Virus record (IMG/VR): IMGVR_UViG_3300046616_000314
Location: 310,001-374,000 of that record
Direction: 5' to 3' (one strand)
DNA: 64,000 bases
The position numbers were made by a program, and so were the translations under genes. Positions 47,765 through 64,000 of this stretch are shown in pieces. Position 1 is the first letter of the stretch. Each line of letters opens with the position of its first letter. The notes under the pieces are model-generated. The model made no database searches, had not been told where the DNA came from, and worked only from the letters and a program-made list of their open reading frames with translations.

Positions 47765-48129
47765 AACCTCCTATGCTTATTGGCATCCATGAATGGCAAA
47801 AATTCTGTGAAGAATATGGCGCCGTTGCGTTGATACCCGATGCTATCTGTTCTTCGCAATTCATCATGCGTCGGGAATTGACGAGAATTTCCAACAGTAC
47901 AAATTTCAAACATTTTGTAACTCTGGGTCCAACGATCAATCATGGTCGCTATGAAATGTTTGATATTTTTCAAACGTGGCGACCCGAGGGACCATGGGCA
48001 TATGTTCAAACGCCCGATTATGATCCCGTTACAAATAAATCGTCAACTGTGTTCAGATTGTACTTTACATCTGAGGAAGATGCTGTAGTATTCAAGATGA
48101 AATTTTCATCTTATAATTACGGGATTTGA
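47761..48129 (+). CDS. FKLKW-family protein
   Basis: LYFTSEEDAVVFKMKFS. Confidence 0.75.
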   Translation: MKPPMLIGIHEWQKFCEEYGAVALIPDAICSSQFIMRRELTRISNSTNFKHFVTLGPTINHGRYEMFDIFQTWRPEGPWAYVQTPDYDPVTNKSSTVFRLYFTSEEDAVVFKMKFSSYNYGI

Positions 48130-48521: not shown

Positions 48522-48531
48522 GGTTCAAATC

Positions 48532-48714
48532 ATGATCGGCATCGTTGACACGCTCGCTACCCTGAAGAAGTTCAGTGACAAGCTTGTTGCTGAACGTATC
48601 GCCGAAGCTCGCGCCCAAATGCCCGAGTGGATGGCGGCTTCGTTCTCTGACCAAGATGTCGAGAACTGGATCACCGAACAACGCCTGCGCGCGGCTGTCG
48701 TCGCCACGGCGTAA
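48532..48714 (+). CDS. hypothetical protein
   Basis: AAGG RBS. Confidence 0.5.
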   Translation: MIGIVDTLATLKKFSDKLVAERIAEARAQMPEWMAASFSDQDVENWITEQRLRAAVVATA

Positions 48715-48974
48715 TGTCTACTGTGGAAATCATAACGACCGATGCGGGTCCGAATGATTGCTTGGTTTACACGACCAAGGTTCATATCGATACCACCAGG
48801 GACAAAGTGTATGTCCCTGGCGCGAATCAGTTGATTCCAGAAATATATGACTTCCTAAATGCGCGTGGCTGTCGTAGTTGGTCGCATCAAAGTAACGGTA
48901 CTTTTGAAGTACGTTTCGTCTTCTACAATATGCAAGAAGATGATCTAGTCATGTTCAAACTAAAATTCATTTGA
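48714..48974 (+). CDS. FKLKW-family small protein
   Basis: EIYDFLNARG ... QEDDLVMFKLKFI. Confidence 0.75.
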   Translation: MSTVEIITTDAGPNDCLVYTTKVHIDTTRDKVYVPGANQLIPEIYDFLNARGCRSWSHQSNGTFEVRFVFYNMQEDDLVMFKLKFI

Positions 48975-50334: not shown

Positions 50335-51075
50335 ATGCAACCCCTGTTCAACGTCAACGGTCTAATGTTCTGGAATGCGAAGCAGATCAAGCTTCGTAAT
50401 ACATTTAAAGAATATTTCGCTGACGGAATGCAAGCCGCACTGATCGCAGCTAACCCGGCTTGGCGTTTCGAGGAAATCGAGGCGCCGTTGCTGACCCCGC
50501 GTGATCTTCTGAACGTGAACTACACCGAAGAAGACATCTGGGTTCAAGGTGGCGAGGAAGCCCGTGAATTGGCTCTACGCCCCGAAACGACCCCTGGCAG
50601 CTACGTCTATGCCCAAAGCCTGTTAAACGGTCACACGGGCTTTAAACCGCCTCTGGTGGTGTGGCAGGCGGGTAAGTCGTTCCGGCGGGAGCAAGATCAA
50701 GTCACCAAGAACATGCGTCTCAAGGAATTCTATCAACAAGAATTCCAATGCATCTTCACGGCTGACACCCTGAACGATTATCACTCGTACATCCTTGAGC
50801 CCGTGCGCAAGATGATTGGCGACATGATCGGTCTGCCGACTCGTCTGGTGGAATCGGATCGTCTGCCGTCTTACAGTAAGATCACCATGGATGTCGAAGT
50901 TGATAACGGCGACAAGTGGATGGAAGTGTGCAGCATTTCTCTTCGCACGGACTTCCCTGACAAGGCTCGCTTTGCGGGCAAGGGTAGCGTGCAAATTGAA
51001 AAAGATTTGCTGGTACTTGAAGTCGCGATTGGTCTGGATCGCTGCGTTTACAATTGGGAGCAAGCTCACAAATGA
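50335..51075 (+). CDS. class II aminoacyl-tRNA synthetase catalytic core (GlyRS-like), no anticodon domain
   Basis: LRPETT.G, QAGKSFRRE, MRLKEFYQQEFQ (motif 2), EVCSIS.R.DF, EVAIGLDR (motif 3). Confidence 0.85.
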   Translation: MQPLFNVNGLMFWNAKQIKLRNTFKEYFADGMQAALIAANPAWRFEEIEAPLLTPRDLLNVNYTEEDIWVQGGEEARELALRPETTPGSYVYAQSLLNGHTGFKPPLVVWQAGKSFRREQDQVTKNMRLKEFYQQEFQCIFTADTLNDYHSYILEPVRKMIGDMIGLPTRLVESDRLPSYSKITMDVEVDNGDKWMEVCSISLRTDFPDKARFAGKGSVQIEKDLLVLEVAIGLDRCVYNWEQAHK

Positions 51076-51508: not shown

Positions 51509-51757
51509 ATGTCTAATGACCTGAAGAAATATGATCGTGTGCGAATTTTGCATGGTTCGCAGACCTTTCACGGTCAGGTCGATAGCATTCGCAAGGGCTA
51601 TTCCAGCCAGTACGCCGATGATCGGCACTACACCGAAGATCGCCTTCTGATTTCCTTCATGCATGACGGGCAGAAGCGTTTCTTCTATCGGAACGATTTC
51701 TACGAGACTGAAGCGGGCTTGGAAGTTCTCTTCGAAAACGCTCTCAATACGATCTAA
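51509..51757 (+). CDS. hypothetical protein
   Basis: GGAG RBS; TTGACA at 51456. Confidence 0.6.
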   Translation: MSNDLKKYDRVRILHGSQTFHGQVDSIRKGYSSQYADDRHYTEDRLLISFMHDGQKRFFYRNDFYETEAGLEVLFENALNTI

Positions 51758-52167
51758 ATAAATTTCAGCGAAAAGAATACTGCGCTATCGTGGTCAAAGA
51801 AACTGACCCGATAGTGCATTAACACGTCTCCGTTTTGGGAATGTTCCCGAATCAAACGGATCGACCATTTTCCCGTAATATTTTCATTCGCAACGATTTC
51901 GTCAGCGATCTTGACGAAAGTATCCGCGAGTTTGAGCGACGAGTTTTCGATCTTGACTTGAACAACATTGCGGCATTCGCCATGCTGAAAATTAGCAAAC
52001 CGTTCACTTCTTAGATTCTTATCATCCCAGGTGATGGATGGATGTTCAAGTCTAAAATAGCTGATAGAGGTTGAATCCGTATGTGGGATTACAAACGCTA
52101 GACCTACGCCGTCACGTCGAAGTGATCCAGATGCAATACTCTTGAAAGTTTCAGAAGCTATACTCAT
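51754..52167 (-). CDS. FKLKW-family protein
   Basis: GKW ... VSFFDHDSAVFFSLKFI. Confidence 0.65.
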   Translation of the reverse strand: MSIASETFKSIASGSLRRDGVGLAFVIPHTDSTSISYFRLEHPSITWDDKNLRSERFANFQHGECRNVVQVKIENSSLKLADTFVKIADEIVANENITGKWSIRLIREHSQNGDVLMHYRVSFFDHDSAVFFSLKFI

Positions 52168-52249
52168 ACTCTAATTTAACACATAATTACTCTTGACGAA
52201 TATTAAAAGCGTGGTACTTTACATTATTCTTTGATGTTTAGGACCCCAC

Positions 52250-52765
52250 ATGGCTAAGATCACCATCAAGACCCGAAGCAAGTACGATTCCATTAAGGAA
52301 GTGCTTCGGGATGGTGTGTTGGTTGCCGAATTCGCGTGGTCGCGTCAAAAGGTCCGTTGCATCGGTCGCCCTGATGAAATCCAATGCAAGGGCACGCTCT
52401 ACGACATCAAGACGGCTACGCATTCGAGCCTGAATGGCTTTGCTTGGTTTAGCGATGTCGTCAAGCATATCAACTCCATCTACGACAACCCTGACAAAGT
52501 GAAGTTCACGTTCGTTGGAAATGATTATAGCCGTCGCGAAGGTCGCCGCGACTATAGCCCGGTTTGGAAAGCTATCGGTCTGCATGGCTGGGGTAAGCTT
52601 GAAGGCGAAGTGGGTGAATGGTGCATCCAAAATTTTGGATACGCCCCGGAAACCCGTCCAGATGCGGCAAATACAAATAGGCTTCAGCGCGGCGCCGCCT
52701 TCAACTATATCTTCATCTTCCGTTGCGATGACGATTTTGTCGCGTTTAAGATGCGGTGGCTCTGA
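52250..52765 (+). CDS. FKLKW-family domain fused to unrelated N-terminal region
   Basis: EWCIQNFGY.P ... RCDDDFVAFKMRWL; AGGA RBS; TTGACG promoter at 52193. Confidence 0.8.
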   Translation: MAKITIKTRSKYDSIKEVLRDGVLVAEFAWSRQKVRCIGRPDEIQCKGTLYDIKTATHSSLNGFAWFSDVVKHINSIYDNPDKVKFTFVGNDYSRREGRRDYSPVWKAIGLHGWGKLEGEVGEWCIQNFGYAPETRPDAANTNRLQRGAAFNYIFIFRCDDDFVAFKMRWL

Positions 52766-53016
52766 TGGCGACGATCACGGCTCCCATATCTCGCTGTCTT
52801 GACGCGGTATATAAAAGCGTCGGTTGGAACGCCGTATTACCAGATACGGTGGTTGGTCTATGGTGCGTTCAACATTTGGGTTATCTTCCGAGTGTTCAAT
52901 ACAATTCGGGTTTCCCTTCCGAAAAGAATTGGCAATGCCACGCTGAAATGTTTGTTGAGTTTCGCAGCGAAGATGATGCCGTTGTCTTCAAAATGAAGTG
53001 GAGCGGGCGAGGATGA
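52765..53016 (+). CDS. FKLKW-family small protein
   Basis: WCVQHLGYLP ... RSEDDAVVFKMKWS. Confidence 0.8.
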   Translation: MATITAPISRCLDAVYKSVGWNAVLPDTVVGLWCVQHLGYLPSVQYNSGFPSEKNWQCHAEMFVEFRSEDDAVVFKMKWSGRG

Positions 53017-53240
53017 CCATGCTCTACATTCCCTATGACGACACGCACCCGGTGTACAATTCGATCCATTCGGTGATCGGAGGTTTCGCCATGAGATCGA
53101 CTGGACCTGTCGCCGAGTGGTGCATGAAAAACATCGGCTATCGTCCCTGGATTTATGCCAGGGGCGGACGCGATTACGGTTTCGAGATCGAGTTTCGTAA
53201 TGACACGGCGGCTGCACTCTTCAAGGTGAAGTGGCTATGA
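53013..53240 (+). CDS. FKLKW-family small protein
   Basis: WCMKNIGYRP ... AALFKVKWL. Confidence 0.8.
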   Translation: MTMLYIPYDDTHPVYNSIHSVIGGFAMRSTGPVAEWCMKNIGYRPWIYARGGRDYGFEIEFRNDTAAALFKVKWL

Positions 53241-53464
53241 AAATGTTTATTTCCTATGCCGATGCTAAGCGTCATGATTTCTATAATCAAATGGCGGCTA
53301 GGGGTGGCTTGCATTTCATTTTTCTATCGCCGTTGTGGATATGGTGCAATGAAGTTCTAGATTACCAACCATTCATCAGTCTTCGGGTTGGTATTGATTC
53401 TGGTTTGGATGTAGAATTCCAGACGGACGAAGATGCGCTATTGTTCAGGATGAAATGGCTATGA
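53237..53464 (+). CDS. FKLKW-family small protein
   Basis: WCNEVLDYQP ... TDEDALLFRMKWL. Confidence 0.8.
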   Translation: MKMFISYADAKRHDFYNQMAARGGLHFIFLSPLWIWCNEVLDYQPFISLRVGIDSGLDVEFQTDEDALLFRMKWL

Positions 53465-53661
53465 TAACACTCACCGTTTCTCGTGAAAAATATGTCAAAG
53501 TCGAAGGCTGGTACGTCAAGCCATATAAGGGTGATTACTTTTATGTTTGGTGTATTGAAAATCTAGGGTATTATCCAAAGACTTCGGCGTTCCTTGATTC
53601 AGTATCCGTTAGTTTCAAAACCGAGGAAGATGCAGGGGTGTTCACAATAAAATGGCTATGA
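53461..53661 (+). CDS. FKLKW-family small protein
   Basis: GWY ... WCIENLGYYP ... EEDAGVFTIKWL. Confidence 0.8.
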   Translation: MITLTVSREKYVKVEGWYVKPYKGDYFYVWCIENLGYYPKTSAFLDSVSVSFKTEEDAGVFTIKWL

Positions 53662-53867
53662 TGGTAGTAACGAAAGTTTCGATGACCGAAGCGCAGTATA
53701 CGAAGTTGCTCGCACTTGACGAGAACTGCCGGAATGCGTGCGTCGATTGGTTTCACGATTCGTTGGGCTATCGTCCTTACACACATAGCGAATGGGGTAG
53801 CCACATTTTCGAAATGACGTTCCTGTCTGAAGAAGATGCGGCATTGTTCAAGATAAAGTTTCTCTGA
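53658..53867 (+). CDS. FKLKW-family small protein
   Basis: WFHDSLGYRP ... EEDAALFKIKFL. Confidence 0.8.
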   Translation: MMVVTKVSMTEAQYTKLLALDENCRNACVDWFHDSLGYRPYTHSEWGSHIFEMTFLSEEDAALFKIKFL

Positions 53868-54463
53868 TGTTGACCTATTATCGTGATCCCATGACGTACA
53901 ACGTCATCTGGTGCCATGAAATCCCCTCGTGCGTGCTTGGGGAAACGCGGGATGTTATCGATATTCAAGTGTTCTTCAATGGACGGTTGGTTCATACCAC
54001 TCGTACTCAAGTCAAAAGCTTGAGACGCGCGCAGGCTCAAAAATTCTTTGAAGTTCGCGTGGCTCCGCTTATGTCGGACATCGGTACGCCGTTGACGAAG
54101 CGTATCAGCGATATCGAAGGCTATAACGACCGCGATTGGATCAACCGGGCACGGACCTTCCGCTATTTCGTCCATGTCGTTGCCTGGAACGAAACGGTCA
54201 TCAAGGAAGAATTCAAGGTCTGGAAATACGGTGTGTTCCTGCCGATCCACGTGCGCGACACGGAAATCCGTTCGAAGGAAATGGCGGTGATGAACGAGTA
54301 CGTCGCAGCCCAGTTCCAAAAAGATGCGGCTGTCGGCTTCACGATCACACAATTTGGTCACACCGAAAATAAAACCGTGGTATACCCTTTTGGTTTCATG
54401 AGCGAGGACGATGCCATGCTCATGATGCTGAAATTCAATGGTTTTAAGATGATTAAGTTATGA
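53867..54463 (+). CDS. FKLKW-family domain with N-terminal extension
   Basis: FMSEDDAMLMMLKF. Confidence 0.7.
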   Translation: MLTYYRDPMTYNVIWCHEIPSCVLGETRDVIDIQVFFNGRLVHTTRTQVKSLRRAQAQKFFEVRVAPLMSDIGTPLTKRISDIEGYNDRDWINRARTFRYFVHVVAWNETVIKEEFKVWKYGVFLPIHVRDTEIRSKEMAVMNEYVAAQFQKDAAVGFTITQFGHTENKTVVYPFGFMSEDDAMLMMLKFNGFKMIKL

Positions 54464-54780
54464 CAGATGGTGAGACAGATTTCCCAGTGAAGGCGACCGC
54501 TGATCAGTATTTTCGGATCGGCGGCTGGTATACCAAAAGTGCCATGGCGCCCGAATTGTTGATGGAACATCCAAATATGGATCAACCATTTCTTGTGTGG
54601 TGTCGGGAGGTCTTGGGTTATTATCCGCACACAGTGGACGTGTGGGAACAACAGTACGATATCTGGGAAAAGACACACGCCAATAACAATATCGATGAGG
54701 TTCCGCGTCTTGAAATCGGTTATATCGCGTACATGCGGACGGCTGAAGACGCAGTAGAATTCAAGCTGAAGTGGTTGTGA
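54460..54780 (+). CDS. FKLKW-family small protein
   Basis: GWY ... WCREVLGYYP ... AEDAVEFKLKWL. Confidence 0.8.
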   Translation: MTDGETDFPVKATADQYFRIGGWYTKSAMAPELLMEHPNMDQPFLVWCREVLGYYPHTVDVWEQQYDIWEKTHANNNIDEVPRLEIGYIAYMRTAEDAVEFKLKWL

Positions 54781-55055
54781 TGGAACTTCTCGACTACACC
54801 ACTAAAAATAAACTGACCGCGAGCGAAGACACCTACATGGCTATTGACGGCTGGTTCGTCAATTCCATCTTGGGTGATTCCGATACGTTGGAAGACGAGA
54901 TTTACAACGAAAACAAATTCGTCATCTGGTGCAGAGACCATTTGGGATACTACCCGTATTCGGTGACACGCGGCGAAGACGACAATGAATGTTATGTTGC
55001 GGTCTATTTCAAGAAAAGAGATCACGCCGCTTTGTTCAGACTACGGTGGCTCTGA
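54780..55055 (+). CDS. FKLKW-family small protein
   Basis: GWF ... WCRDHLGYYP ... HAALFRLRWL. Confidence 0.8.
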   Translation: MELLDYTTKNKLTASEDTYMAIDGWFVNSILGDSDTLEDEIYNENKFVIWCRDHLGYYPYSVTRGEDDNECYVAVYFKKRDHAALFRLRWL

Positions 55056-55339
55056 TGGAAATTTTGGACAAGGCAACGCGCCACAAATTGATTGCGCCAT
55101 ATGACAAGTACATGGCAACCGATGGTTGGTTTGCTAAGACAATCATGGTCCCAAGTATGGAAGGTGTCGAACGATACGACGACGCTCTAGGGATTCCTTT
55201 CATCGGGTGGTGTGAACAAGAACTGGGTTACTATCCGTACACAAAACTAATTTCCGCACGCGCGACCAATTTTCAACACATGGTGGTCTATTTTAAAAAA
55301 GCCGAACACGCTGCCATATTCAAATTAAAATGGTGCTAG
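55055..55339 (+). CDS. FKLKW-family small protein
   Basis: GWF ... WCEQELGYYP ... HAAIFKLKWC. Confidence 0.8.
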   Translation: MEILDKATRHKLIAPYDKYMATDGWFAKTIMVPSMEGVERYDDALGIPFIGWCEQELGYYPYTKLISARATNFQHMVVYFKKAEHAAIFKLKWC

Positions 55340-55621
55340 ATGGATATCATGCTCCATCAAACGCCGCATAGTGTTGACGTATCAACATCACAGTACGTTC
55401 AAACGTCTGGTTGGTATGTGACCACGTGTTTCAAGCATTGTGGCTATGACGTGTTCCATAATCCTATATATGCAGAACTTAATTCGTATGAATTTGTCAA
55501 ATGGTGCAAAGAAAAACTTGGCTACTATCCTCTCTCCGAAGATTCAAAGACGGAAGAGGTCATAACCACGTATTTCAAAACTGCCGCCGACTTACTTCAT
55601 TTTCGGTTGAAATGGCTATGA
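55340..55621 (+). CDS. FKLKW-family small protein
   Basis: GWY ... WCKEKLGYYP ... DLLHFRLKWL. Confidence 0.8.
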   Translation: MDIMLHQTPHSVDVSTSQYVQTSGWYVTTCFKHCGYDVFHNPIYAELNSYEFVKWCKEKLGYYPLSEDSKTEEVITTYFKTAADLLHFRLKWL

Positions 55622-55908
55622 CATTTCCACAAGATCGCCACGTCGATTTGTACGATCCTGCAATCTATACGCATTCAATGTTCTTGACGAACCGCGAGTA
55701 TGAGAGTGTGGAGGGATGGTTCCGCGATCCCGAAGACGCTAGCTATGAGTTTTATGAATGGTGCGTCAGCACCTTGGGGTATTATCCCATCGTCACGCAT
55801 GATTATCTGTCACCCGCGAGAAGGCTACGGGCTTCGGGGGTTAAGAGCACGTGCGGAAATTTTAAAAGTGAAGAAGATGCCATTCTGTTTAGGCTGAAAT
55901 GGCTATGA
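55618..55908 (+). CDS. FKLKW-family small protein
   Basis: GWF ... WCVSTLGYYP ... EEDAILFRLKWL. Confidence 0.8.
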   Translation: MTFPQDRHVDLYDPAIYTHSMFLTNREYESVEGWFRDPEDASYEFYEWCVSTLGYYPIVTHDYLSPARRLRASGVKSTCGNFKSEEDAILFRLKWL

Positions 55909-56183
55909 AAAAAACCAACAGCATGTCTTCCACGGTATTAGGCAACGATGTCGTGTATTTTGAGACACCGGGTTGGTACACCGAATGCGACCTTGCGTCG
56001 TATTCAGAAGAAAATAATATGAAACGCTATTACCACGTGATCGACACCAAGTATGAATACGTGCGTTGGTGTCTCGACCACCTTGGCTACTATCCAACTA
56101 CTCGTCTGAGCGATACCAACGAATTCATCATCTATTTGGATAGTGATGAAGACGCTACTCTATTCAAGTTGAAATGGTTATGA
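55905..56183 (+). CDS. FKLKW-family small protein
   Basis: GWY ... WCLDHLGYYP ... DEDATLFKLKWL. Confidence 0.8.
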   Translation: MKKTNSMSSTVLGNDVVYFETPGWYTECDLASYSEENNMKRYYHVIDTKYEYVRWCLDHLGYYPTTRLSDTNEFIIYLDSDEDATLFKLKWL

Positions 56184-56449
56184 AATATATTCAGCTACGC
56201 AAACCTACCAAGCATTGTCTTACGGCAAAATACCATCAGTACATTTTGACTGATGGATGGTTCACGTACGAAATTGCCATAGATGTCGGGCGCGAGCACG
56301 CTGAGCTTCATCCCTTTGTACAATGGTGCTTTGTTAATCTAGGGTACTATCCGTATTCTGAAGACTCCCGCGCGCATGTCGAAGATTTGATAAACATCTA
56401 TTTTCGATCCCAAGCCGACGCCGCTATGTTCAAGATGAAGTGGCTCTAG
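56180..56449 (+). CDS. FKLKW-family small protein
   Basis: GWF ... WCFVNLGYYP ... ADAAMFKMKWL. Confidence 0.8.
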   Translation: MKYIQLRKPTKHCLTAKYHQYILTDGWFTYEIAIDVGREHAELHPFVQWCFVNLGYYPYSEDSRAHVEDLINIYFRSQADAAMFKMKWL

Positions 56450-56450
56450 A

Positions 56451-56672
56451 ATGGGCTACATCATGACCATCCCGCGCCTAGAATACGAAGACGTTCCCGG
56501 CTGGTACGTCAATCCTAATTTGCTTGTGGGCGAATATCGGGAATGGTGTGATCTTCATCTTGGTTATTATCCGTTCACCGAACATAGTGATATTGGTGAC
56601 GTGGATGGAAAAACGTACGTCATGTTTGAGTCTGAAGAAGATTCACTTTTGTTCAAGTTGAAATGGTTATGA
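56451..56672 (+). CDS. FKLKW-family small protein
   Basis: GWY ... WCDLHLGYYP ... EEDSLLFKLKWL. Confidence 0.8.
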   Translation: MGYIMTIPRLEYEDVPGWYVNPNLLVGEYREWCDLHLGYYPFTEHSDIGDVDGKTYVMFESEEDSLLFKLKWL

Positions 56673-56905
56673 AGACTTACCCAGTATCGATATGGAAGTA
56701 TTACGATACTGACGGTTGGTTGATAACCGAAACCCGTGATGAGATATTGCCGGATATTGTTCTGCATTCAGAATACCATGAATGGTGCATGAAACATCTT
56801 GGCTATTACCCAATGACGTTATATACTGATTCGTCAGACGATTATGTTGACGTGGAATTTGAAACGGACGACCACGCGGCATTGTTTATATTGAAGTGGG
56901 GATAA
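56669..56905 (+). CDS. FKLKW-family small protein
   Basis: GWL ... WCMKHLGYYP ... DHAALFILKWG. Confidence 0.8.
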   Translation: MKTYPVSIWKYYDTDGWLITETRDEILPDIVLHSEYHEWCMKHLGYYPMTLYTDSSDDYVDVEFETDDHAALFILKWG

Positions 56906-57177
56906 TGCCGCCTATCGACGTGACATACATTCACCGAGACCTTCCGCATCTTATGGTGTGGAAGAAGGCGGATGATATCACCCGTGGCGGCGGAATAAGC
57001 ACGGAATTTGTCATGTCCGATTATTTCCGCCAATGGTGCATGGAAAACGTCGGCTATCTTCCCGAAGTGTGGATGGATAACCTTCGACTACGTAATTCGA
57101 TGGATGAGCATTTCTGGGTGAAGTTCATCTTCGATGATCCAGAGCACGCTATGTTGTTCAGGTTCAAATTCCAATGA
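56905..57177 (+). CDS. FKLKW-family small protein
   Basis: WCMENVGYLP ... EHAMLFRFKFQ. Confidence 0.8.
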   Translation: MPPIDVTYIHRDLPHLMVWKKADDITRGGGISTEFVMSDYFRQWCMENVGYLPEVWMDNLRLRNSMDEHFWVKFIFDDPEHAMLFRFKFQ

Positions 57178-57428
57178 CCCGCAACGAAACGATCTACTTC
57201 AACCCAGAGCAAACGCCGTTTCGGTATAGCCGTAAGCGGGCTCTTGTCATTGGGCTAGCCAGCCACAATGCATCGCGGTTTGGGCACCTTACAGATGAAG
57301 CCAATGCCATTACGAAATGGATGGATACCAATGGCATCATGTGGTGGTGGCGTGGGATGCTGGGGAATTACACCACGATTGGAATTTATGAAAAAGACTT
57401 TCCTTATTTCAAATTGAAATGGCTATGA
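57174..57428 (+). CDS. FKLKW-family small protein
   Basis: KWMDTNGI ... EKDFPYFKLKWL. Confidence 0.75.
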   Translation: MTRNETIYFNPEQTPFRYSRKRALVIGLASHNASRFGHLTDEANAITKWMDTNGIMWWWRGMLGNYTTIGIYEKDFPYFKLKWL

Positions 57429-57658
57429 CCGAACTAGTGATCGAATATGACACCTTCATGGATGTCGATGGCTGGTTCATCGACCCACGGTATCGGCGTA
57501 ACGATCCGTTCACGTCATGGTGCATGGAAAATCTTGGCTATTATCCCAAGGCAGAAATGCGCTCTACGGCACCGCCGACCGAGAGTTATTCTACCGGAGT
57601 GGTTGGACATTTCCTAAGCGACGATCATGCCGCCATGTTCAAGTTGAAATGGCTATGA
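57425..57658 (+). CDS. FKLKW-family small protein
   Basis: GWF ... WCMENLGYYP ... DHAAMFKLKWL. Confidence 0.8.
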   Translation: MTELVIEYDTFMDVDGWFIDPRYRRNDPFTSWCMENLGYYPKAEMRSTAPPTESYSTGVVGHFLSDDHAAMFKLKWL

Positions 57659-57879
57659 TTACTGTCCCGGTTGAATATCACGTGTATTATGAGATTGAAG
57701 GCTGGTACGTCAATCAACATGAGCCGGATACTGAGGACGACGCCCATTTTAGCAAATGGTGTATGAACACTCTTGGTTATTATCCATGGATTCACTACTC
57801 ACGAAGCGGCTTCGGTGAGCTTACCGCAAATTTCGAGACTGCCGAAGACGCAGCAGTATTCAGGTTGAAATGGCTATGA
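57655..57879 (+). CDS. FKLKW-family small protein
   Basis: GWY ... WCMNTLGYYP ... EDAAVFRLKWL. Confidence 0.8.
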   Translation: MITVPVEYHVYYEIEGWYVNQHEPDTEDDAHFSKWCMNTLGYYPWIHYSRSGFGELTANFETAEDAAVFRLKWL

Positions 57880-58106
57880 CCAGTATTCTCGTTCGGTATG
57901 GGACCTATGCACGAGTCGATGGCTGGTACATGGATTGGGAATTTTCAAAGCCCGAAGAGGCTTTTGTACTCTGGTGCGATAAGCATCTAGGTTATTATCC
58001 CAAAACTACATCTGTTCGCAACACATTGAATGGCAGTACGGAATTTGTTAGAGTAGAATTAGAAAACGATGACCATGCAATGTTGTTCAAGTTGAAGTGG
58101 CTATGA
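57876..58106 (+). CDS. FKLKW-family small protein
   Basis: GWY ... WCDKHLGYYP ... DHAMLFKLKWL. Confidence 0.8.
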   Translation: MTSILVRYGTYARVDGWYMDWEFSKPEEAFVLWCDKHLGYYPKTTSVRNTLNGSTEFVRVELENDDHAMLFKLKWL

Positions 58107-58474
58107 GAATTCGTCAGCTTTCCTTCCCGGTTGTGAACAGCAAAGAGGTTGTCACCTTCTATTTTGCTGCGATCCCCACGCGCCTAATCTTCGGCGACGT
58201 GAACGCCCAGGATTGGTTGAGACAGAACTGTGGGTTTTGTAATACTGAACTGATTTTCAATCCCGTTGAGCGTGCCATTCGTAAAGACTTCTACGAAAGC
58301 AATGTCATGTGGGGTTTGATTATAGACGCAAACGATACAGAAACATCGGGCTATGGGCGTATGTTCTATAAATTGTGTGAGCCTGATATGTCCGAATATC
58401 TCACGCGCAGTTATTGCATTTGGTTTCGGCGCGAAGAAGATGCGGCAATGTTCAAGATGAAATATCATGGATAG
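58103..58474 (+). CDS. FKLKW-family protein
   Basis: DWLRQNCG ... WFRREEDAAMFKMKY. Confidence 0.8.
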   Translation: MRIRQLSFPVVNSKEVVTFYFAAIPTRLIFGDVNAQDWLRQNCGFCNTELIFNPVERAIRKDFYESNVMWGLIIDANDTETSGYGRMFYKLCEPDMSEYLTRSYCIWFRREEDAAMFKMKYHG

Positions 58475-58994
58475 AATTACGATCATGGGTCCGACCGAGA
58501 CCCACGAGCTTTCCGGGTATTCCCTGAATCACGCGATTGCCTATGTCTCCAATTTCATATCGCTTCGCGAACACGTTATCAAATGGTTGAACACCTATCA
58601 GATCAACGTGACCGTTCAAGTTATCGCTTCGCAGCAATACAACGCCAAGAAAGAGCGGCTTGATGCACGTAACCAAGGCTATGACAAAATCGGACGTAAG
58701 ATCATCTTGCGTTTCGAGCGTGATTCCGAAGCGTTGCTATTCTGGTATCACCATGATCTGAAACACACGGTTCATTTTTGCGACAAGTTGGGTCAGCACA
58801 TTCATTATGGTGATCGCCGGTATTATTTCACCGCACATATTGAAGACTGGATTGCGGAAAATGATATCCTTGTCCCGCTGATTGATCGAACAGCGAAGAC
58901 ATTTCAAGAAGGCGTGACCGAAGTCGGATATCACTATGATATCTGGTTTGCTAAGGACGAACATGCTACAATGTTTAAATTGAAATGGGGCTGA
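58467..58994 (+). CDS. FKLKW-family protein, two tandem domains
   Basis: KWLNTY..LRFERDSEALLF; DWIAEND..IWFAKDEHATMFKLKWG. Confidence 0.8.
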   Translation: MDRITIMGPTETHELSGYSLNHAIAYVSNFISLREHVIKWLNTYQINVTVQVIASQQYNAKKERLDARNQGYDKIGRKIILRFERDSEALLFWYHHDLKHTVHFCDKLGQHIHYGDRRYYFTAHIEDWIAENDILVPLIDRTAKTFQEGVTEVGYHYDIWFAKDEHATMFKLKWG

Positions 58995-58996
58995 AG

Positions 58997-59311
58997 ATGT
59001 TCGTTGATTACGAAAAAATCGGCACGTACTTGATGATTATGGCTGGCATTGGGATGCTGTTCCTTGTGCCTCTCATCTTCATCGCAGGCGACCAATCCTT
59101 TGACGATGCCGTTGCAAAGCAAATGGTCGTTGATCGCGGCTACACCAGTGTTCGAATCGACCAACCGGCGCCTATGCAATGCGCTGGACGCTATCAGACC
59201 AACTCACGCTATTTTGTGGCGAAGCGTACAGATGGACGATGGGCACGGGGTGTATTATGCGCCGGAACGTTCAATCAGAACGTCGATGTCAAAGAATACA
59301 AAGTCTACTAG
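58997..59311 (+). CDS. membrane-anchored protein
   Basis: N-terminal TM, two Cys; sits at the convergence point of the two arrays. Confidence 0.65.
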   Translation: MFVDYEKIGTYLMIMAGIGMLFLVPLIFIAGDQSFDDAVAKQMVVDRGYTSVRIDQPAPMQCAGRYQTNSRYFVAKRTDGRWARGVLCAGTFNQNVDVKEYKVY

Positions 59312-59523
59312 CCGTACTTCAGCTTCAGCATAGCCGCTGCATCTTCGTTCTTATGATACATCTGTATTCTGAGCATTCGGGGATCGCCGAAGCTATAGCC
59401 CCAACGTGTTCCAAAATTTGACGCCATGAACTGATATAGTTCATCGGTCAACATGAAATCGTCTGCATTGCCTGCCATTGGCAAATACACGGTGTGGAAA
59501 CACTCGTCAGTAGCGGTTTTCAT
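59308..59523 (-). CDS. FKLKW-family small protein
   Basis: ELYQFMASNFG ... NEDAAAMLKLKYG. Confidence 0.75.
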   Translation of the reverse strand: MKTATDECFHTVYLPMAGNADDFMLTDELYQFMASNFGTRWGYSFGDPRMLRIQMYHKNEDAAAMLKLKYG

Positions 59524-59876
59524 TGCGTAACCCATAGTAAGCGCATAAGCGTCATATCTTCTTCACTAGTGAAGAAAAACCGATGTAGTTTCGGATGAAT
59601 CGGGTCTTCAGCCATGATGAAATACGTCCAAGGCTGAAACGTAATCTTTTTCGGGACAATATTCAACATATTATCGAGAAAGCTTTTGTTGCTGGTATGG
59701 TATTCGATATCAAACGTGAATAGTTCTTTGTGTTCAAGCATGTCATTAATATACGACATGATCCAATCTATGTTTTCATTCGTGGCGGTAATGTAATGGA
59801 AGCTCAAGCGTCGCAAACCTTGTTCGGCGGCGCGAGCATATACTTCATCAAGGTCTTTGGAGGTTATTTTAGGCAT
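59520..59876 (-). CDS. FKLKW-family protein
   Basis: FFFTSEEDMTLMRLLW. Confidence 0.7.
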   Translation of the reverse strand: MPKITSKDLDEVYARAAEQGLRRLSFHYITATNENIDWIMSYINDMLEHKELFTFDIEYHTSNKSFLDNMLNIVPKKITFQPWTYFIMAEDPIHPKLHRFFFTSEEDMTLMRLLWVTQ

Positions 59877-60109
59877 CAGCCGAACTTCATCTTTACAAGC
59901 GCAATGTCATCATCCGTGCCCGCAAAAGTGCTGATGGTGATGATTTTGGTCAAAGGATTCATCGAATAGCTCCAAGCTAATTCGAACGTTTGGCTCATAT
60001 ACATATACAGTTCGTAAGACAAGAACATGGTTCTGCTATGCCGAGTGTCGGTTGTGCGCTCACTGAACGCCAGTTCGATCTTACGGGTATTGATAATGTG
60101 ATACTTCAT
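59876..60109 (-). CDS. FKLKW-family small protein
   Basis: ELYMYMSQTF ... TDDDIALVKMKFG. Confidence 0.7.
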   Translation of the reverse strand: MKYHIINTRKIELAFSERTTDTRHSRTMFLSYELYMYMSQTFELAWSYSMNPLTKIITISTFAGTDDDIALVKMKFG

Positions 60110-60348
60110 AGGAATTTCAGCTTGAATAGCATCGCGATCTCTTCATCATTGAAGTTGATGATGAAACGTTTGCGGTTCGACAATAGCAATCCCGTCACGA
60201 ATTGAAACCCTGGTGGGGCAATGCCGTGGTCGTTGAACCATTCCAGCACGTGCGGACGGTATTCCCAACGCGCAGACGGTCCAACGATGAAAATCTTATC
60301 ATCGGTGTCTGACGCCCATTTGCGGGCTGATTCGTGAATGACCTTCAT
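60106..60348 (-). CDS. FKLKW-family small protein
   Basis: EWFNDHGI.PP ... DEEIAMLFKLKFL. Confidence 0.8.
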   Translation of the reverse strand: MKVIHESARKWASDTDDKIFIVGPSARWEYRPHVLEWFNDHGIAPPGFQFVTGLLLSNRKRFIINFNDEEIAMLFKLKFL

Positions 60349-60560
60349 AGCCATTTCATCTTGAATGCAACGGCTTCTTCACTCGATAAGAATTCGAGGA
60401 CGATCATGTCTTTGGTGGCACTTTTAGTGATAGATGGAAGGCTGATGCCATTGGCATTGCACCATTGCTTCACTTCGCCCGAAAGTCTCGCCTGCCACGA
60501 ATTGTAGTAGACGATTTCTTTGGCGGCGGGCAAATGATAGGAAAAGGCGATTGTCTTCAT
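60345..60560 (-). CDS. FKLKW-family small protein
   Basis: QWCNANGI.LP ... SEEAVAFKMKWL. Confidence 0.8.
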   Translation of the reverse strand: MKTIAFSYHLPAAKEIVYYNSWQARLSGEVKQWCNANGISLPSITKSATKDMIVLEFLSSEEAVAFKMKWL

Positions 60561-60790
60561 AGGAATTTCAGCTTGAACATGGCTGCATCGTCCTCACTAG
60601 CGAACGTCAACACAAAGCCGTTTGCAGTCTTACCAGTATACCGAAGTTCTCGAAAACAAATCAATTTAATTCCGGCGGCGAGAAGTTGCGTTCTCCCCTC
60701 CCTGGTAAGACGGCGATTGTAGGACCCATGTTCGACGCTCAAAAAAGTGAATTCAATGAACTGCGAATATGTAACAGTAAGGTCGCTCAT
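60557..60790 (-). CDS. FKLKW-family small protein
   Basis: LTFASEDDAAMFKLKFL. Confidence 0.8.
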   Translation of the reverse strand: MSDLTVTYSQFIEFTFLSVEHGSYNRRLTREGRTQLLAAGIKLICFRELRYTGKTANGFVLTFASEDDAAMFKLKFL

Positions 60791-61035
60791 GACCATTTCA
60801 TCTTGAACATCATGGCATCCTCATCCGTATAAAATGAGAATACGTACATATAGGACAACACCACTTCGCCGGGAAAGTGTGCAGCGTTGAATGCTGTCGT
60901 GTTGATACGCGGTTCTCGCGCCAAATTCTTTCCACACCAGATGCGAATGTCTTTGCGCAAAACATCGTGATCGTGCGATTGGATATTAATGTAATCGCGA
61001 ATGTTGTACGGGTGGATATAGACACAATTACTCAT
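60787..61035 (-). CDS. FKLKW-family small protein
   Basis: IWCGKNL ... TDEDAMMFKMKWS. Confidence 0.8.
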   Translation of the reverse strand: MSNCVYIHPYNIRDYINIQSHDHDVLRKDIRIWCGKNLAREPRINTTAFNAAHFPGEVVLSYMYVFSFYTDEDAMMFKMKWS

Positions 61036-61718
61036 GACGCCCATTTCATCTTGTAGATAAGGCGGGCTTCGTCCGTGGGGAGGAAGAGGAAGTTTTCTTT
61101 GCTATTCCAATTCCAAATGAATTCGCATTTGTGTTGGATGATGAGATCGTAAAGGGCGCCGTCGAACGCTTTGTCAGGCGTATTATATTCCGACTGTTCC
61201 TTGATCCAACTCGACGTACACCGGGTTGGGTCTAGTAGCGGCGTGGGGACGTATTCGAAGCCGATTCTATTCCACGTGTATTGCCCTGGACGTTCACCGT
61301 AGCCGAGACGTTGAACAAGATCGTAGGTCAGGTGAACATACGTTTCACCAAATGCTTCATCGTATTTTGCCAAGAAGGCGCACTGATCCGGTGTGACCGG
61401 ATTGGCGAATTCAAGATGGAAAATGGTGACGTGTTTTGGATTCTTGCGGTTCAGGGGACGATTGATGTTCGTCCGACGCAGCAACGGCAATTGCCCGAAG
61501 TGTTCAAGAAACCACGCTTGATAATCGGGTGCGATCTGCGACCAATACCAATTGGTGCTCCCGATGTCGATTCGTTCGTCGTCATGCCCGGCATGTTCAC
61601 CGAACCAGAAAGCGGCGAGATTATTCGAGATAAGAATCTCTACCGTAGGCTTAACTTCAGGCAAGCGCGTATGATTGCTGCCTACCTTGATGACCGTGAT
61701 ATTGGTAAGTTTTCCCAT
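61032..61718 (-). CDS. FKLKW-family protein, probably two domains (leaderless)
   Basis: AWFLEHFG..P; PTDEARLIYKMKW; TAGACA-N17-TATTGT 6 nt before ATG. Confidence 0.75.
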   Translation of the reverse strand: MGKLTNITVIKVGSNHTRLPEVKPTVEILISNNLAAFWFGEHAGHDDERIDIGSTNWYWSQIAPDYQAWFLEHFGQLPLLRRTNINRPLNRKNPKHVTIFHLEFANPVTPDQCAFLAKYDEAFGETYVHLTYDLVQRLGYGERPGQYTWNRIGFEYVPTPLLDPTRCTSSWIKEQSEYNTPDKAFDGALYDLIIQHKCEFIWNWNSKENFLFLPTDEARLIYKMKWAS

Positions 61719-61750
61719 GCGTAGACAATAAACGAAAATACGTTCGTTGT

Positions 61751-62080
61751 CTAGTGCAAGTATACGTGCAAGAACTTCATCTTGAACATCGCCGCCATGT
61801 CTTCATCGGGAAAAGGAATGACGTATGTAATAGGGTGCTTTACTTTAGTACCATTGATTCGAGCCAACTGGTCTGCAAAGGCTGTCTCGCCCGTATCGGG
61901 TTCTTCGATGCCCAGTGATGCCAGAACCTCTTCGGACTGTTCTGGGGGCACTTCAGCAATCTCTACACCCCGTTCGTCGCACCATTCTTGCACGGTGCGA
62001 TAAAGCTCGCGACGTTTCGCCCAACCGTTGAAGTGGGTCAGCTTGAATACTTGTTCTTCTGTGAGATAGAGATAAAACAT
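61751..62080 (-). CDS. FKLKW-family small protein
   Basis: EWCDERGV ... PDEDMAAMFKMKFL. Confidence 0.8.
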   Translation of the reverse strand: MFYLYLTEEQVFKLTHFNGWAKRRELYRTVQEWCDERGVEIAEVPPEQSEEVLASLGIEEPDTGETAFADQLARINGTKVKHPITYVIPFPDEDMAAMFKMKFLHVYLH

Positions 62081-62087
62081 GAGATAT

Positions 62088-62348
62088 TTATAGCCATTTC
62101 AATTTGAACAATGTCGCGTCATCTTCAGATTGGAATTCAATACTGTAGCTATTGATAGTTTTGTCTTCGGGGTCTTCATCAGACCAATTAAGGTGCGTGG
62201 TGATCTTGATGTCATATCCCAGGTTGTCGAGACACCATTCACAAACTTCTTTGCCATGGATAGCAGGACGATAGTCGCGACCAATATAGCTCCATTCACA
62301 GAGTAAGGTGTAGCCCTTCTCTTTGGTCAAATGCAATCGCGAAGTCAT
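62088..62348 (-). CDS. FKLKW-family small protein
   Basis: EWCLDNLGY ... SEDDATLFKLKWL. Confidence 0.8.
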   Translation of the reverse strand: MTSRLHLTKEKGYTLLCEWSYIGRDYRPAIHGKEVCEWCLDNLGYDIKITTHLNWSDEDPEDKTINSYSIEFQSEDDATLFKLKWL

Positions 62349-62665
62349 AGCCATTTCATCTTGAACATCAGTAGATCGGCTGCGGTCTTGAATTTCAAAG
62401 AATAGTAATGGGTGGCGTCCGAATGTTTGGGAGCTTTGTGACGCAGAAATAGCGGAACAAGTTCTAGATTTTGATCACACCATTCTTCAATATTTGCGGC
62501 TAGTCTATAGCTATTGCACAAACGGTTGCCGACCATGCGAAAAACAAAATAGTCTCGCCAGTTCGCGCTTGGAACATCGATGGTAATTTTGTTTCGCACT
62601 GATATTGGCACCTTGATTACGTGCTTCAGGTCTGATGCGCGAAGGTTTCTGGGATACTCAGTCAT
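62345..62665 (-). CDS. FKLKW-family small protein
   Basis: EWCDQNL ... TAADLLMFKMKWL. Confidence 0.8.
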   Translation of the reverse strand: MTEYPRNLRASDLKHVIKVPISVRNKITIDVPSANWRDYFVFRMVGNRLCNSYRLAANIEEWCDQNLELVPLFLRHKAPKHSDATHYYSLKFKTAADLLMFKMKWL

Positions 62666-62931
62666 AGAAATTTCAACTTGAACTGGACCAATTGTTCGTC
62701 AGTGGAATCAGGCAAACAAATCAGCCATTCGTTACCAATCATTCCGCTATTACACGTGATGTACGGAAGGGGATCGAACCCGGCGATCTTACACCATTCG
62801 ATTTCATCTGGCTTGGTGATGTTGTACTCAAGTTCTTTCCCCTTCAGAACCGAGACACCATAGGGCGACCACGTTGCGAAACGAGTGAGCAACTGAGTAA
62901 TGTCGATGTCGATATAGCGATCTTGTTTCAT
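62662..62931 (-). CDS. FKLKW-family small protein
   Basis: EWCKIAGF ... TDEQLVQFKLKFL. Confidence 0.8.
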   Translation of the reverse strand: MKQDRYIDIDITQLLTRFATWSPYGVSVLKGKELEYNITKPDEIEWCKIAGFDPLPYITCNSGMIGNEWLICLPDSTDEQLVQFKLKFL

Positions 62932-63179
62932 AGCCACTTCAACTTGAACAGGGTCGCATCTTCTTCAGATCGAAATACCAGCTTGAGTTTTCCTACGTCT
63001 GGTTGATCAGCTTCTTGAATCCGGGGCGTAGCAATCTTGTTTTCAACACACCATTTTTTGATAGGAGGTACCCAACGGTATATGAAATATGGATTCCCCT
63101 CACTGGGATGATAATCAGGATTATGCTCTGAAAGGGTCAGAGGAATCAATGCGATATATTGACAAACGAGTGCAGTCAT
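62928..63179 (-). CDS. FKLKW-family small protein
   Basis: KWCVENKI.TP ... SEEDATLFKLKWL. Confidence 0.8.
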   Translation of the reverse strand: MTALVCQYIALIPLTLSEHNPDYHPSEGNPYFIYRWVPPIKKWCVENKIATPRIQEADQPDVGKLKLVFRSEEDATLFKLKWL

Positions 63180-63394
63180 AGCCACTTCATCTTGAACATC
63201 AACGCGGTTTCTTCGTCATCGAACACCAGTCGGAATTCTTCGTCGTCCCAGGACAGAGCGGGCATGGTAATCTTGTTGGTGGCGCACCATGACGCGACTT
63301 GCGGTCTCCAATTACACACATAGTTACCGTCTTGTGGGTAAGCGTCGATAACCAATTTAAATATCTGCATTTGTGGATAAAGATATTCAGTCAT
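63176..63394 (-). CDS. FKLKW-family small protein
   Basis: SWCATNKI.MP ... DEETALMFKMKWL. Confidence 0.8.
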   Translation of the reverse strand: MTEYLYPQMQIFKLVIDAYPQDGNYVCNWRPQVASWCATNKITMPALSWDDEEFRLVFDDEETALMFKMKWL

Positions 63395-63609
63395 AGCCAC
63401 TTCAGCTTGAATAACGTTGCGTCTTCATCGTTGCGATATCCTATCCGAAACTCTTGATCGTCTATTATGCTTTGGCGCAAGTATGGGATGATGATATCGT
63501 TGGCGATACACCACTTACTGACAGCCTCGTGCCAATACCACATGCCTGAAGGTCTATTACAGCGGCATAGGTCTTTCAGTTGCGTGTATGTGTAGTAGAT
63601 GAGGATCAT
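63391..63609 (-). CDS. FKLKW-family small protein
   Basis: KWCIANDI.IP ... DEDATLFKLKWL. Confidence 0.8.
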   Translation of the reverse strand: MILIYYTYTQLKDLCRCNRPSGMWYWHEAVSKWCIANDIIIPYLRQSIIDDQEFRIGYRNDEDATLFKLKWL

Positions 63610-63833
63610 CGCCATTTCAGTTTGAAGAGTGCCGCTTCTTCTTCGGTGTCGATAAACATATCATGAACCCAATCTGTAATATAGCCCACACGACTATAAA
63701 TTGGACAAGAATCTATATTATATACTATGCGATTATCGAAGCACCATTTCTCCATTTCGGGAAGCAACTCCCATTCATTCCAATCAAATTGGGTGACTTC
63801 GCGGTCGTATAGACTGATACGGGTACGGACCAT
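63606..63833 (-). CDS. FKLKW-family small protein
   Basis: KWCFDNRI ... TEEEAALFKLKWR. Confidence 0.8.
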   Translation of the reverse strand: MVRTRISLYDREVTQFDWNEWELLPEMEKWCFDNRIVYNIDSCPIYSRVGYITDWVHDMFIDTEEEAALFKLKWR

Positions 63834-63988
63834 CACACACCGGGTATGTGTCTAGAGTGATATTCCCGTTGATAATCGCTACACTGATCAAAATAGCCCG
63901 TCATGCAGATGGGACATTCGGGTTGATAATGTTCCTCTTCTTGCGAAGACCCTTGCCACCAATTCCAGATAGCCTTGAGAATTTTCAT
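63833..63988 (-). CDS. 51-aa non-family protein embedded in the array
   Basis: MKILKAIWNWW...ECPIC...; ATGA-coupled to an upstream ...FKWL* end and TGATG-coupled to the next gene. Confidence 0.55.
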   Translation of the reverse strand: MKILKAIWNWWQGSSQEEEHYQPECPICMTGYFDQCSDYQREYHSRHIPGV

Positions 63989-64000
63989 AGCCATTTGAAC

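Follow-up and report, generated by a model that had tools for sequence, protein, structure and literature searches.

An expansion of small, anciently diverged paralogs in a T4-superfamily jumbo phage

A 561-kb soil-type jumbo phage carries at least 174 very different copies of one previously undescribed, essentially phage-only protein of about 80 residues, 79 of them in a single pair of head-on gene arrays, which appears to be the largest gene-family expansion reported for a phage. The analysis started from a 64,000-nucleotide stretch of IMG/VR record IMGVR_UViG_3300046616_000314 (positions 310,001 to 374,000; hereafter, the window), for which the original prediction described about 60 small paralogs with variable N-termini and loops and a constant C-terminal helix, forming two convergent arrays. 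That observation is confirmed, with corrections to the number of scattered copies, the size of the minus-strand array, and the nature of the sequence variation. The source contig (561,116 bp) belongs to a T4-superfamily jumbo phage close to Sinorhizobium phage Phosso, as indicated by a T4-type portal, a prohead protease, and a Gp23 capsid protein that is 81% identical to that of Phosso and 67% identical to that of Atu_ph07. The count of 174 distinct members comes from the 29% of the contig that was sampled and is, therefore, a lower bound.

Two convergent arrays and their scattered relatives

A profile HMM built and iterated on the ORFs of the window, many of them back-to-back small ORFs ending in ..EEDAxxFKLKWL, finds 58 ORFs (60 domains) at E<0.01, namely, 23 consecutive plus-strand genes (52250-58994), 16 minus-strand genes (59308-63836), and 19 scattered between 1.5 and 49 kb. 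Three or four more are borderline (51754-52167, 40793-41095, 41092-41397), compared with the about 24 scattered copies initially proposed. The matches are not due to chance, given that the E-values range from 1e-8 to 1e-24, in one frame only, and that there are hundreds of homologs elsewhere. The profile reproduces the motifs noted in the original prediction, W42-C/M43-x-x-N46-[LF]47-G48..P51, [ILV]68-x-F70, and [ST]72-E-E-D-A-x-[LM]-F-[KR]-[LM]-K-[WF], and the arrays converge at 59308-59311, as predicted.

The plus-strand array includes longer members with N-terminal extensions (52250-52765, 53867-54463) and a two-domain member (58467-58994); the longer members yielded no Pfam domain in their extensions and thus no informative fusion. 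The last gene of the plus-strand unit, at the convergence point, is a non-family ORF of 108 aa (58985-59311, +) with one strongly hydrophobic, membrane-like segment (maximum Kyte-Doolittle 19-residue window 2.6) and no hit to the family HMM, Pfam, or PHROGs. The 16 minus-strand genes of the window, among them the two-domain 61032-61718, are only the promoter-distal part of an array that continues upstream past the window end to 56 consecutive family genes over about 15.8 kb, so that the convergent pair jointly spans 22.8 kb. Embedded in the minus array is a 53-aa Cys-rich non-family ORF (63833-63994, -; ..CPIC..C..), without an HMM hit, whose start overlaps the stop codon of the upstream member. 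Of the 19 scattered members, six form a loose cluster at 45789-48974 on the plus strand (45789-46070, 46049-46318, 47280-47513, 47504-47764, 47701-48129, and 48714-48974; E-values 1e-8 to 1e-17), and six lie among baseplate and recombination genes at 35670-40530: 35670-35996(+), 36578-36922(-), 36889-37155(-), 38959-39258(-), 39249-39617(-), and 40096-40530(-). The remaining seven are spread over 1509-25026: 1509-1826(+), 1836-2096(+), 11535-11852(+), 13743-14009(+), 16330-16674(-), 16674-16886(-), and 24787-25026(+), the last of these next to the major capsid gene.

Genes within the arrays are joined by stop/start overlaps. Of the 22 plus-array junctions, 14 are ATGA overlaps, 5 are of the TGATG type, and 3 carry a Shine-Dalgarno (SD)-like 4-mer, whereas of 53 minus-array junctions, 33 are ATGA overlaps and 1 has an SD-like 4-mer; taken together, 57 of 75 junctions are ATGA- or TGATG-type and 4 of 75 are SD-like, whereas the capsid and scaffold-position genes have AAGGAG. 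The array genes are therefore probably translated by termination-reinitiation along very long polycistronic mRNAs, although re-initiation through 56 genes would have to be very efficient, or else unseen internal starts must exist. The recurrent 'MAM' N-terminus is a by-product of the overlap with the upstream ..K-W-L-stop (AAATGGCTATGA). Promoter-like and terminator-like sites are not enriched in 51-64 kb (24 found against 25.0 expected, and 8 against 10.7, respectively). The 52138-52249 region, which comprises the 82-bp gap before the plus array (52168-52249) and the last 30 bases of the preceding minus-strand ORF (51754-52167), holds two sigma-70-like candidates (52142-52170, 52176-52204) and a repeated ACTCTTGA box but, given that promoter-like sites are not enriched over shuffles, it is no more than a candidate promoter region. 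Neither the T4 late-promoter motif TATAAATA nor the ACTCTTGA box showed useful enrichment.

Predicted fold, divergence, and distribution of the family

We modeled two different members with AlphaFold, and both give the same beta-alpha-beta-beta-alpha core at pLDDT 82-96. For the 79-aa representative encoded at 57419-57658 (+), AlphaFold2 with the paralog alignment gave pLDDT 86.3 and pTM 0.72, with a strand at residues 4-9, helices at 10-15 and 30-39, strands at 44-49 and 59-65, and a helix at 68-78. In the model of a two-domain member, the C-terminal domain is confident (pLDDT 82-96), but domain packing was not resolved (pTM 0.47, with the N-terminal half below pLDDT 50). The common unit appears as a soluble, mildly acidic domain (median pI 5.5, net negative charge, no membrane segments), in which about 55 residues (alpha1-beta2-beta3-alpha2) form the conserved core, preceded by a poorly conserved beta1 and short helix, whereas insertions, deletions, and sequence variation are concentrated in the loop before alpha1, the beta2-beta3 hairpin, and the N-terminus. 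Judging by residue type and the secondary structure of the model alone, in the absence of coordinates, the conserved positions look like a hydrophobic core (W42, C43, L47, F70, A76, F79, L81, W83), turn residues (G48, P51), and a helix cap ([ST]72-E-E-D).

No characterized family accounts for the expansion. Searches of Pfam-A, PHROGs v4, NCBIfam 20, and PADLOC 2 returned only scattered single hits at E>=0.003; in particular, there was no Pfam hit, to RRM or any other model, at E<=1 for 10 window members or at E<=0.1 for 64 diverse members. The profile search against PDB sequences gave a best, spurious E of 0.046, and Foldseek recovered only uncharacterized phage proteins at prob 0.94-0.99, with no PDB hit at E<=0.001. 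The best PDB hit had E 0.44, and TM did not exceed 0.48, including to ferredoxin-like proteins; KH domains top this weak list (best E 0.44, TM 0.42). The predicted order of elements matches a ferredoxin/RRM-like fold lacking its last strand (three strands, no beta4), so that the resemblance to the RRM beta3-alpha2 junction holds only as predicted topology, and beta-alpha-alpha-beta-beta-alpha also equals the order of a type I KH domain, but the GXXG loop that such a domain has between helices 1 and 2 is absent, with only a single conserved G in a G-W-[YF] segment.

The paralogs are anciently diverged (median 24%, maximum 44-49% identity) rather than hypervariable, as had been proposed. Six ortholog pairs from other phage contigs show dN/dS of 0.06-0.19, indicative of purifying selection, and third codon positions vary freely at conserved residues, so the constraint is on the protein. 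A diversity-generating mechanism was rejected because there are no near-identical copies and orthologs are under purifying selection. A trace of tandem duplication remains, the most similar paralog being adjacent more often than expected by chance (16% against 4%), and the arrays lie where synteny with Phosso breaks.

Outside this genome, the profile search recovered 515 representative clusters in metagenomes; four long repeat proteins in that search are spurious or match helix 1 only. Tandem arrays occur in other IMG/VR contigs and in a 201-kb T4-like contig, and the first 50 kb of Phosso contain at least 21 copies, whereas the first 50 kb of Atu_ph07 have only one borderline member. Only 1 true hit was found in 120 pattern-matched loci of bacterial and archaeal genomes. 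The paralogs are too diverged for BLAST at database scale: megablast of the region and tblastn of three single members against 50,697 phage records found nothing or only the query itself, and a word-indexed protein search was nearly blind to the family, so that per-genome HMM scans were needed. DNA patterns for the C-terminal motif located further loci, although most matches to the shorter pattern were due to chance, with only 32 of 110 loci holding members. The literature on Atu_ph07, AP-J-162, and jumbo phages does not mention the family.

Possible functions and comparison with known systems

The interpretation offered in the original prediction, a conserved mini-scaffold with variable surfaces acting as a phage-encoded library of binders, decoys, or adaptors, is only partly supported: the single predicted scaffold, the concentration of diversity in two loops and the N-terminal segment, the lack of a characterized family, and the analogy in predicted topology hold, whereas RRM or KH homology was not detected, and most residues of the constant helix are hydrophobic or helix-capping, so that, judging by residue type and the modeled helix, they look like fold determinants rather than a proven docking tail. 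What the analysis itself establishes is the existence of a phage-specific family of real genes, its common domain and variable segments as modeled, its ancient amplification, partly by tandem duplication, in the variable regions of a Phosso/Atu_ph07-like genome, its maintenance under purifying selection, and the organization of the arrays; any binding or other function is inferred. Tentatively, we favor a repertoire of small cytoplasmic binding modules, in which each paralog would use its own loops and N-terminus to bind a different target, as host-takeover or counter-defense accessory proteins typical of the variable regions of T4-like phages. There is, however, no direct evidence of a binding partner, expression, or timing behind this reading, and 174 distinct host targets is a lot for one phage. 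The conserved charges (E73-E74-D75, K80, K82), if exposed, may form a shared interface but might be purely structural salt bridges. The lack of signs of recent diversifying selection among the paralogs fits stable sub-functions but not a fast arms race.

Two alternatives, both unlikely on present evidence, deserve consideration. The constant C-terminal helix could dock every paralog on one shared machine, for example, a phage or host ClpXP protease or RNA polymerase, with the variable part recruiting different substrates, as in F-box or BTB expansions. In agreement with this possibility, the domain is always C-terminal, most members stop one residue after the conserved W, K82 is the most conserved charged residue (52 of 57), and relatives encode Clp subunits (ClpP in Phosso, a Clp ATPase in Atu_ph07). 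Yet most conserved helix residues look core-forming by residue type, the exact C-terminal stop is also explained by the ATGA overlap, the first 50 kb of Atu_ph07, which hold its Clp ATPase gene, have only one borderline member, phage RIO-1 has a member but no annotated Clp gene in the 6 kb examined, and no partner has been identified. In its boldest and still improbable form, this hypothesis envisages a genome-encoded combinatorial repertoire of more than 170 stable paralogs acting as substrate-specific adaptors or inhibitors and plugging into one hub, such as a phage or host Clp-type protease or another central machine, whereby one jumbo phage could neutralize or re-route a very large set of host proteins, including toxin-antitoxin and defense systems, a bacterial-virus counterpart of the F-box or BTB expansions of eukaryotes and giant viruses. 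Alternatively, because the predicted three-stranded sheet with helices on one face would be half of a ferredoxin-like sandwich, members might pair as homo- or heterodimers, perhaps with operon neighbors, and work combinatorially. Natural two-domain members exist in the window and in other phages (three proteins), coupled translation of neighbors would favor co-assembly, and the weak Foldseek neighbors include oligomeric ferredoxin-like proteins such as PII/GlnK and the papillomavirus E2 DNA-binding domain; however, two-domain forms are rare, and the modeled one showed no confident inter-domain packing.

The remaining possibilities seem more doubtful still. RNA or ssDNA binding of a KH/RRM-like type, regulating phage or host transcripts, is suggested by the order of elements, the [ILV]xF-x-S-E-E-D-A junction, the weak KH matches, and the location of distant single-copy relatives, RIO-1 gp29 and Atu_ph07 gp038, among nuclease and replication genes, but is weakened by the absence of GXXG or RNP motifs, the negative charge, and the lack of Pfam or significant structural matches. 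Mostly dispensable or selfish duplicates, persisting because the conserved gene junction promotes unequal recombination, would be compatible with the conserved junction sequence, the excess of adjacent nearest paralogs, and the location in a region non-syntenic with Phosso, but hardly with the fact that all copies found are intact ORFs despite at most 49% identity, with the low dN/dS, with the free third positions where amino acids are fixed, or with the absence of recent duplicates. Least likely, members could be packaged, internal or ejected, virion proteins like the polymorphic internal proteins of T-even phages, given that jumbo and T4-like phages package many small proteins and that a gp21-type prohead protease is encoded nearby (27784-28425); the conserved part, however, is a predicted folded C-terminal domain rather than an N-terminal capsid-targeting peptide, no virion proteomics links exist, the copy number is very large, and the context is operon-like.

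If the counts hold for the whole genome, this is by far the largest paralog expansion reported for a phage, involving a predicted fold with no characterized relative. It could account for part of why this genome is about 90 kb larger than its cultured relative, given that the 174 members already encode roughly 45 kb (our estimate, at about 85 residues each). The family also offers a natural library of more than 500 sequence-diverse variants of one tiny scaffold that could be used to discover host-takeover or anti-defense targets, or as a binder scaffold, and, with at least 21 members in Phosso, which infects a harmless laboratory host, its role is open to direct testing.

Several known systems invite comparison. 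Ferredoxin-like, RRM, and type I KH domains are two-layer alpha/beta sandwiches with the same order of elements as in the models, in which a strand ending in an aromatic residue is followed by an acidic helix cap, but the modeled domain has no fourth strand, no RNP or GXXG motif, and no significant sequence or structure match to them. The multigene families of large eukaryotic viruses, such as the ankyrin, BTB, and F-box families or ASFV MGFs, likewise comprise dozens to hundreds of diverged paralogs in terminal or variable genome regions and are presumed to interface with host pathways, whereas here the virus is bacterial and the domain, for which there is as yet no host-interaction evidence, is unrelated and far smaller. 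The hyperplastic ('ORFanage') regions of T4-like phages and their PeSL cassettes (PMC2839356, PMC4122927, PMC4503421) are similar in that blocks of small genes of unknown function, variable between relatives and thought to be host-adaptation accessories, lie between conserved core modules of a T4-superfamily genome. Here, however, nearly all the small genes belong to one family and, instead of each carrying its own early promoter and stem-loop cassette, overlap by 1-4 nt in largely SD-less operons of 23 and 56 genes. Finally, in Bacillus phage G, a zinc ribbon underwent a lineage-specific expansion to about 35 copies, called 'unprecedented' in a review of 224 jumbo phages (PMC7824862); there, too, one small domain is massively amplified in one jumbo phage and its function is only guessed, but the family described here has a different predicted fold without metal ligands, is at least five times more numerous, and is shared with many uncultivated phages and with Phosso.

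Gene Arrays and the Extent of the Expansion

Between positions 52250 and 64000, the window is filled, almost without gaps, by small ORFs ending in the motif [ST]-E-E-D-A-x-x-F-K-L-K-W-L. A profile built from these ORFs and iterated over all six-frame ORFs of the window converged on 58 ORFs (60 domains) at E<0.01, namely, 23 consecutive genes on the plus strand (52250-58994), 16 genes on the minus strand (59308-63836), and 19 genes scattered between 1.5 and 49 kb, and this profile shows the motifs that had been described from the sequence alone. The observation behind the original prediction, about 60 small paralogues with a constant C-terminal motif in two convergent arrays, is therefore confirmed, including the copy number. 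Four further small ORFs, at 40793-41738 (minus strand) and 51754-52167 (minus strand), end in degenerate versions of the motif (FVKLKVG, FLKIKASQ, DFKLRFG, and FFSLKFI) and fall at or below the profile threshold; these are probably highly diverged members. Two non-family ORFs are located within the cluster. One of these (58985-59311, plus strand) encodes 108 amino acids with one strongly hydrophobic, membrane-like N-terminal segment, closes the plus-strand unit exactly where the two arrays converge, and overlaps the stop codon of the last minus-strand gene by 4 nt. The other (63833-63994, minus strand) is a Cys-rich ORF of 53 amino acids (ECPICMTGYFDQC) that is embedded in the minus array and joined to the upstream family member by the same ATGA-type overlap. 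Among the scattered members, the one next to the major capsid gene (24787-25026, plus strand) ends in an 11-residue tail that overlaps a G+C-rich hairpin (GGCGGGGTTTCCCCCGCC), which lies between the two convergent genes and is probably a bidirectional terminator.

The window, which corresponds to positions 310,001-374,000 of the 561,116-bp IMG/VR contig IMGVR_UViG_3300046616_000314 (= Ga0495668_0000005), encodes a T4-type portal and Gp23 capsid protein as well as a prohead protease, a baseplate protein, and PhoH. The capsid protein is 81% identical to that of Sinorhizobium phage Phosso (469 kb), a cultured relative, and 67% identical to that of Agrobacterium phage Atu_ph07. Synteny with Phosso holds for window positions 34.5-43.8 kb and then breaks, and the corresponding Phosso stretch has no arrays. 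Other genes in the window include an HNH endonuclease domain fused to an RNA ligase domain (9543-10559, plus strand; Pfam RNA_ligase 3.9e-28, HNH 6.5e-4), an architecture noted for some jumbo-phage Rnl2 ligases (PMC7824862), a single tRNA-Gly(tcc) gene (5424-5498, plus strand), and, just upstream of the plus array, a 246-aa protein (50335-51075, plus strand) that matches only the class II aminoacyl-tRNA synthetase core (tRNA-synt_2b, 7.9e-10); Phosso annotates a short "histidyl-tRNA synthetase" elsewhere.

Examination of the adjacent parts of the contig showed that the minus array continues past the end of the window to 56 consecutive family genes spanning 15.8 kb, so that, together with the 23-gene plus array, there is a convergent cluster of 79 family genes in about 22.8 kb. 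Further clusters lie at contig positions 1-15 kb, 90-110 kb, and 540-560 kb, and in the roughly 164 kb (29%) of the genome that we examined, there are 174 distinct members. Other genes encoded in two of these parts of the genome (90,169-110,633 and 539,502-559,756) include an ART-PolyVal-type ADP-ribosyltransferase domain protein (528 aa), split RF-1/PCRF fragments, a NUMOD3 protein, a collagen-repeat protein, and a Peptidase_C93 protein.

Protein-Level Selection, Gene Organization, and the Predicted Fold

The paralogues are old, with a median identity of 24% and a maximum of 44% in the window, or 49% when the array extension is included. The most similar paralogue lies within two genes in 16% of cases, against 4% expected, which is a faint trace of tandem duplication. 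At the conserved C-terminal residues, the third codon positions are essentially free, with the four Ala codons used about equally, as are both Phe, both Lys, and both Asp codons, so that the constraint is on the protein and not on a DNA signal. The one exception is the last codon, which is biased to CTA such that CTA-TGA creates the ATGA start/stop overlap. Six orthologous pairs between related uncultivated phages gave dN/dS of 0.06-0.19, whereas a seventh pair was saturated at synonymous sites. The description of the family as "hypervariable" in the original prediction is thus incorrect: these are stably maintained, anciently diverged copies.

Of the 75 intra-array junctions, 47 are ATGA overlaps and 10 are TGATG/TAATG overlaps, and only 4 have an SD-like 4-mer upstream; by contrast, the capsid gene and the neighboring scaffold-position gene have AAGGAG. 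Sigma-70-like promoters and intrinsic terminators are not enriched inside the arrays. The recurrent "MAM" N-terminus is simply the +2-frame reading of AAA-TGG-CTA-TGA. The simplest reading of this organization, inferred from sequence alone, is that the arrays are expressed as long polycistronic mRNAs translated by termination-reinitiation.

AlphaFold2, run with the paralogue alignment, gave a confident model for the 79-aa member at 57419-57658 (pLDDT 86.3, pTM 0.72), with the predicted elements being strand 4-9, short helix 10-15, helix 30-39, strand 44-49, strand 59-65, and helix 68-78. The C-terminal domain of a second, 175-aa member shows the same beta-alpha-beta-beta-alpha core at pLDDT 82-96, and the FKLKW segment is helical in both models. 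Judging by residue type, the conserved residues look like core positions (W42, C43, L47, F70, A76, F79, L81, and W83), turn residues (G48 and P51), or a helix cap ([ST]-E-E-D), whereas the conserved E73, E74, D75, K80, and K82 are merely candidates for an exposed common surface. Insertions cluster after profile columns 31 and 60, that is, in the loop before alpha1 and in the beta2-beta3 hairpin, and the first 30 columns are missing or unalignable in 45-70% of the members. By hydrophobicity, the members are soluble, with only 1 of 98 reaching the cut-off, and that marginally, and they are mildly acidic, with a median pI of 5.5.

A Phage-Specific Family

An exhaustive profile search of 1.84 billion representative proteins recovered 515 proteins at E<=1e-3. 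Of the best 149 of these, 52 come from this one genome, and nearly all the rest are proteins of 57-200 aa that end in the same motif. Two long eukaryote-like repeat proteins recovered in the profile search (P0026 and P0048), with units containing DWCAQHGGSLPK, hit the profile only over helix 1 (W-C-x-x-x-G-x-x-P); we treated this motif resemblance as spurious. Other IMG/VR contigs (415, 252, 78, 75, 69, and 35 kb) and a 201-kb T4-like contig carry tandem arrays with the same overlap architecture. The first 50 kb of Phosso contains 21 members, all annotated as hypothetical proteins and interleaved with many tRNA genes, with adjacent CDSs overlapping by 4 nt as in the window, whereas the first 50 kb of Atu_ph07 contains one borderline member. 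Among 50,697 deposited phage records, a consensus query found only Phosso and one protein of Pseudoalteromonas phage RIO-1, gp29, which lies among nuclease and replication genes. Of 120 pattern-matched loci in bacterial and archaeal genomes, one holds a true member, on a 2.7-kb contig binned in a Bacteroidetes MAG that carries an orthologue of a member from the IMG/VR contigs. The family is therefore phage-specific.

Functional Interpretation and Comparison with Known Systems

The statements on structure, evolution, and gene organization rest on the results of the computational analyses, with the fold known from predicted models, whereas the function, including any binding activity, is inferred. 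We tentatively favor the view that the family is a repertoire of small cytoplasmic binding modules, that is, accessory host-takeover or counter-defense proteins. The reasons are the constant scaffold with variable loops, the location in variable regions of a T4-like genome, the phage-only distribution, the lack of enzyme-like or nucleic-acid-binding features, and the stable retention of many distinct copies. The interpretation given in the original prediction, a conserved mini-scaffold with variable surfaces that behaves like a binder library, was partly supported: the scaffold and the variable loops are borne out by the models and the profile, whereas the binding role remains a hypothesis.

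Several alternatives are conceivable but appear less likely. The members could be hub adaptors that dock through the constant helix or, with about the same low likelihood, self-associating half-sandwich units, although the model of the two-domain member that might have informed the latter possibility was not confident. KH/RRM-like nucleic-acid binders seem more doubtful still, and selfish or neutral duplicates are comparably improbable, whereas packaged virion proteins are the least likely of these possibilities.

No member hits Pfam-A, PHROGs, NCBIfam, or PADLOC, and a profile search of PDB sequences gave only spurious hits. A Foldseek search against PDB returned no hit better than E 0.44 and TM 0.48, with the weak neighbors being KH domains, PII/GlnK, and the papillomavirus E2 DNA-binding domain, whereas a search against BFVD found only uncharacterized proteins of uncultured tailed phages at prob 0.94-0.99. 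The predicted order of elements equals that of a type I KH domain, or of a ferredoxin/RRM fold without its last strand, but the defining motifs are absent; we treat this as a topological resemblance rather than membership. With respect to scale, a comparative study of 224 jumbo phages describes a zinc-ribbon expansion of about 35 copies in Bacillus phage G as "unprecedented" (PMC7824862). Lineage-specific multigene families are already known from the variable regions of large viruses, and the present case, a real and very large expansion of an undescribed, phage-only mini-domain, stands apart in its exceptional copy number and in the unusual architecture of its SD-less operons.
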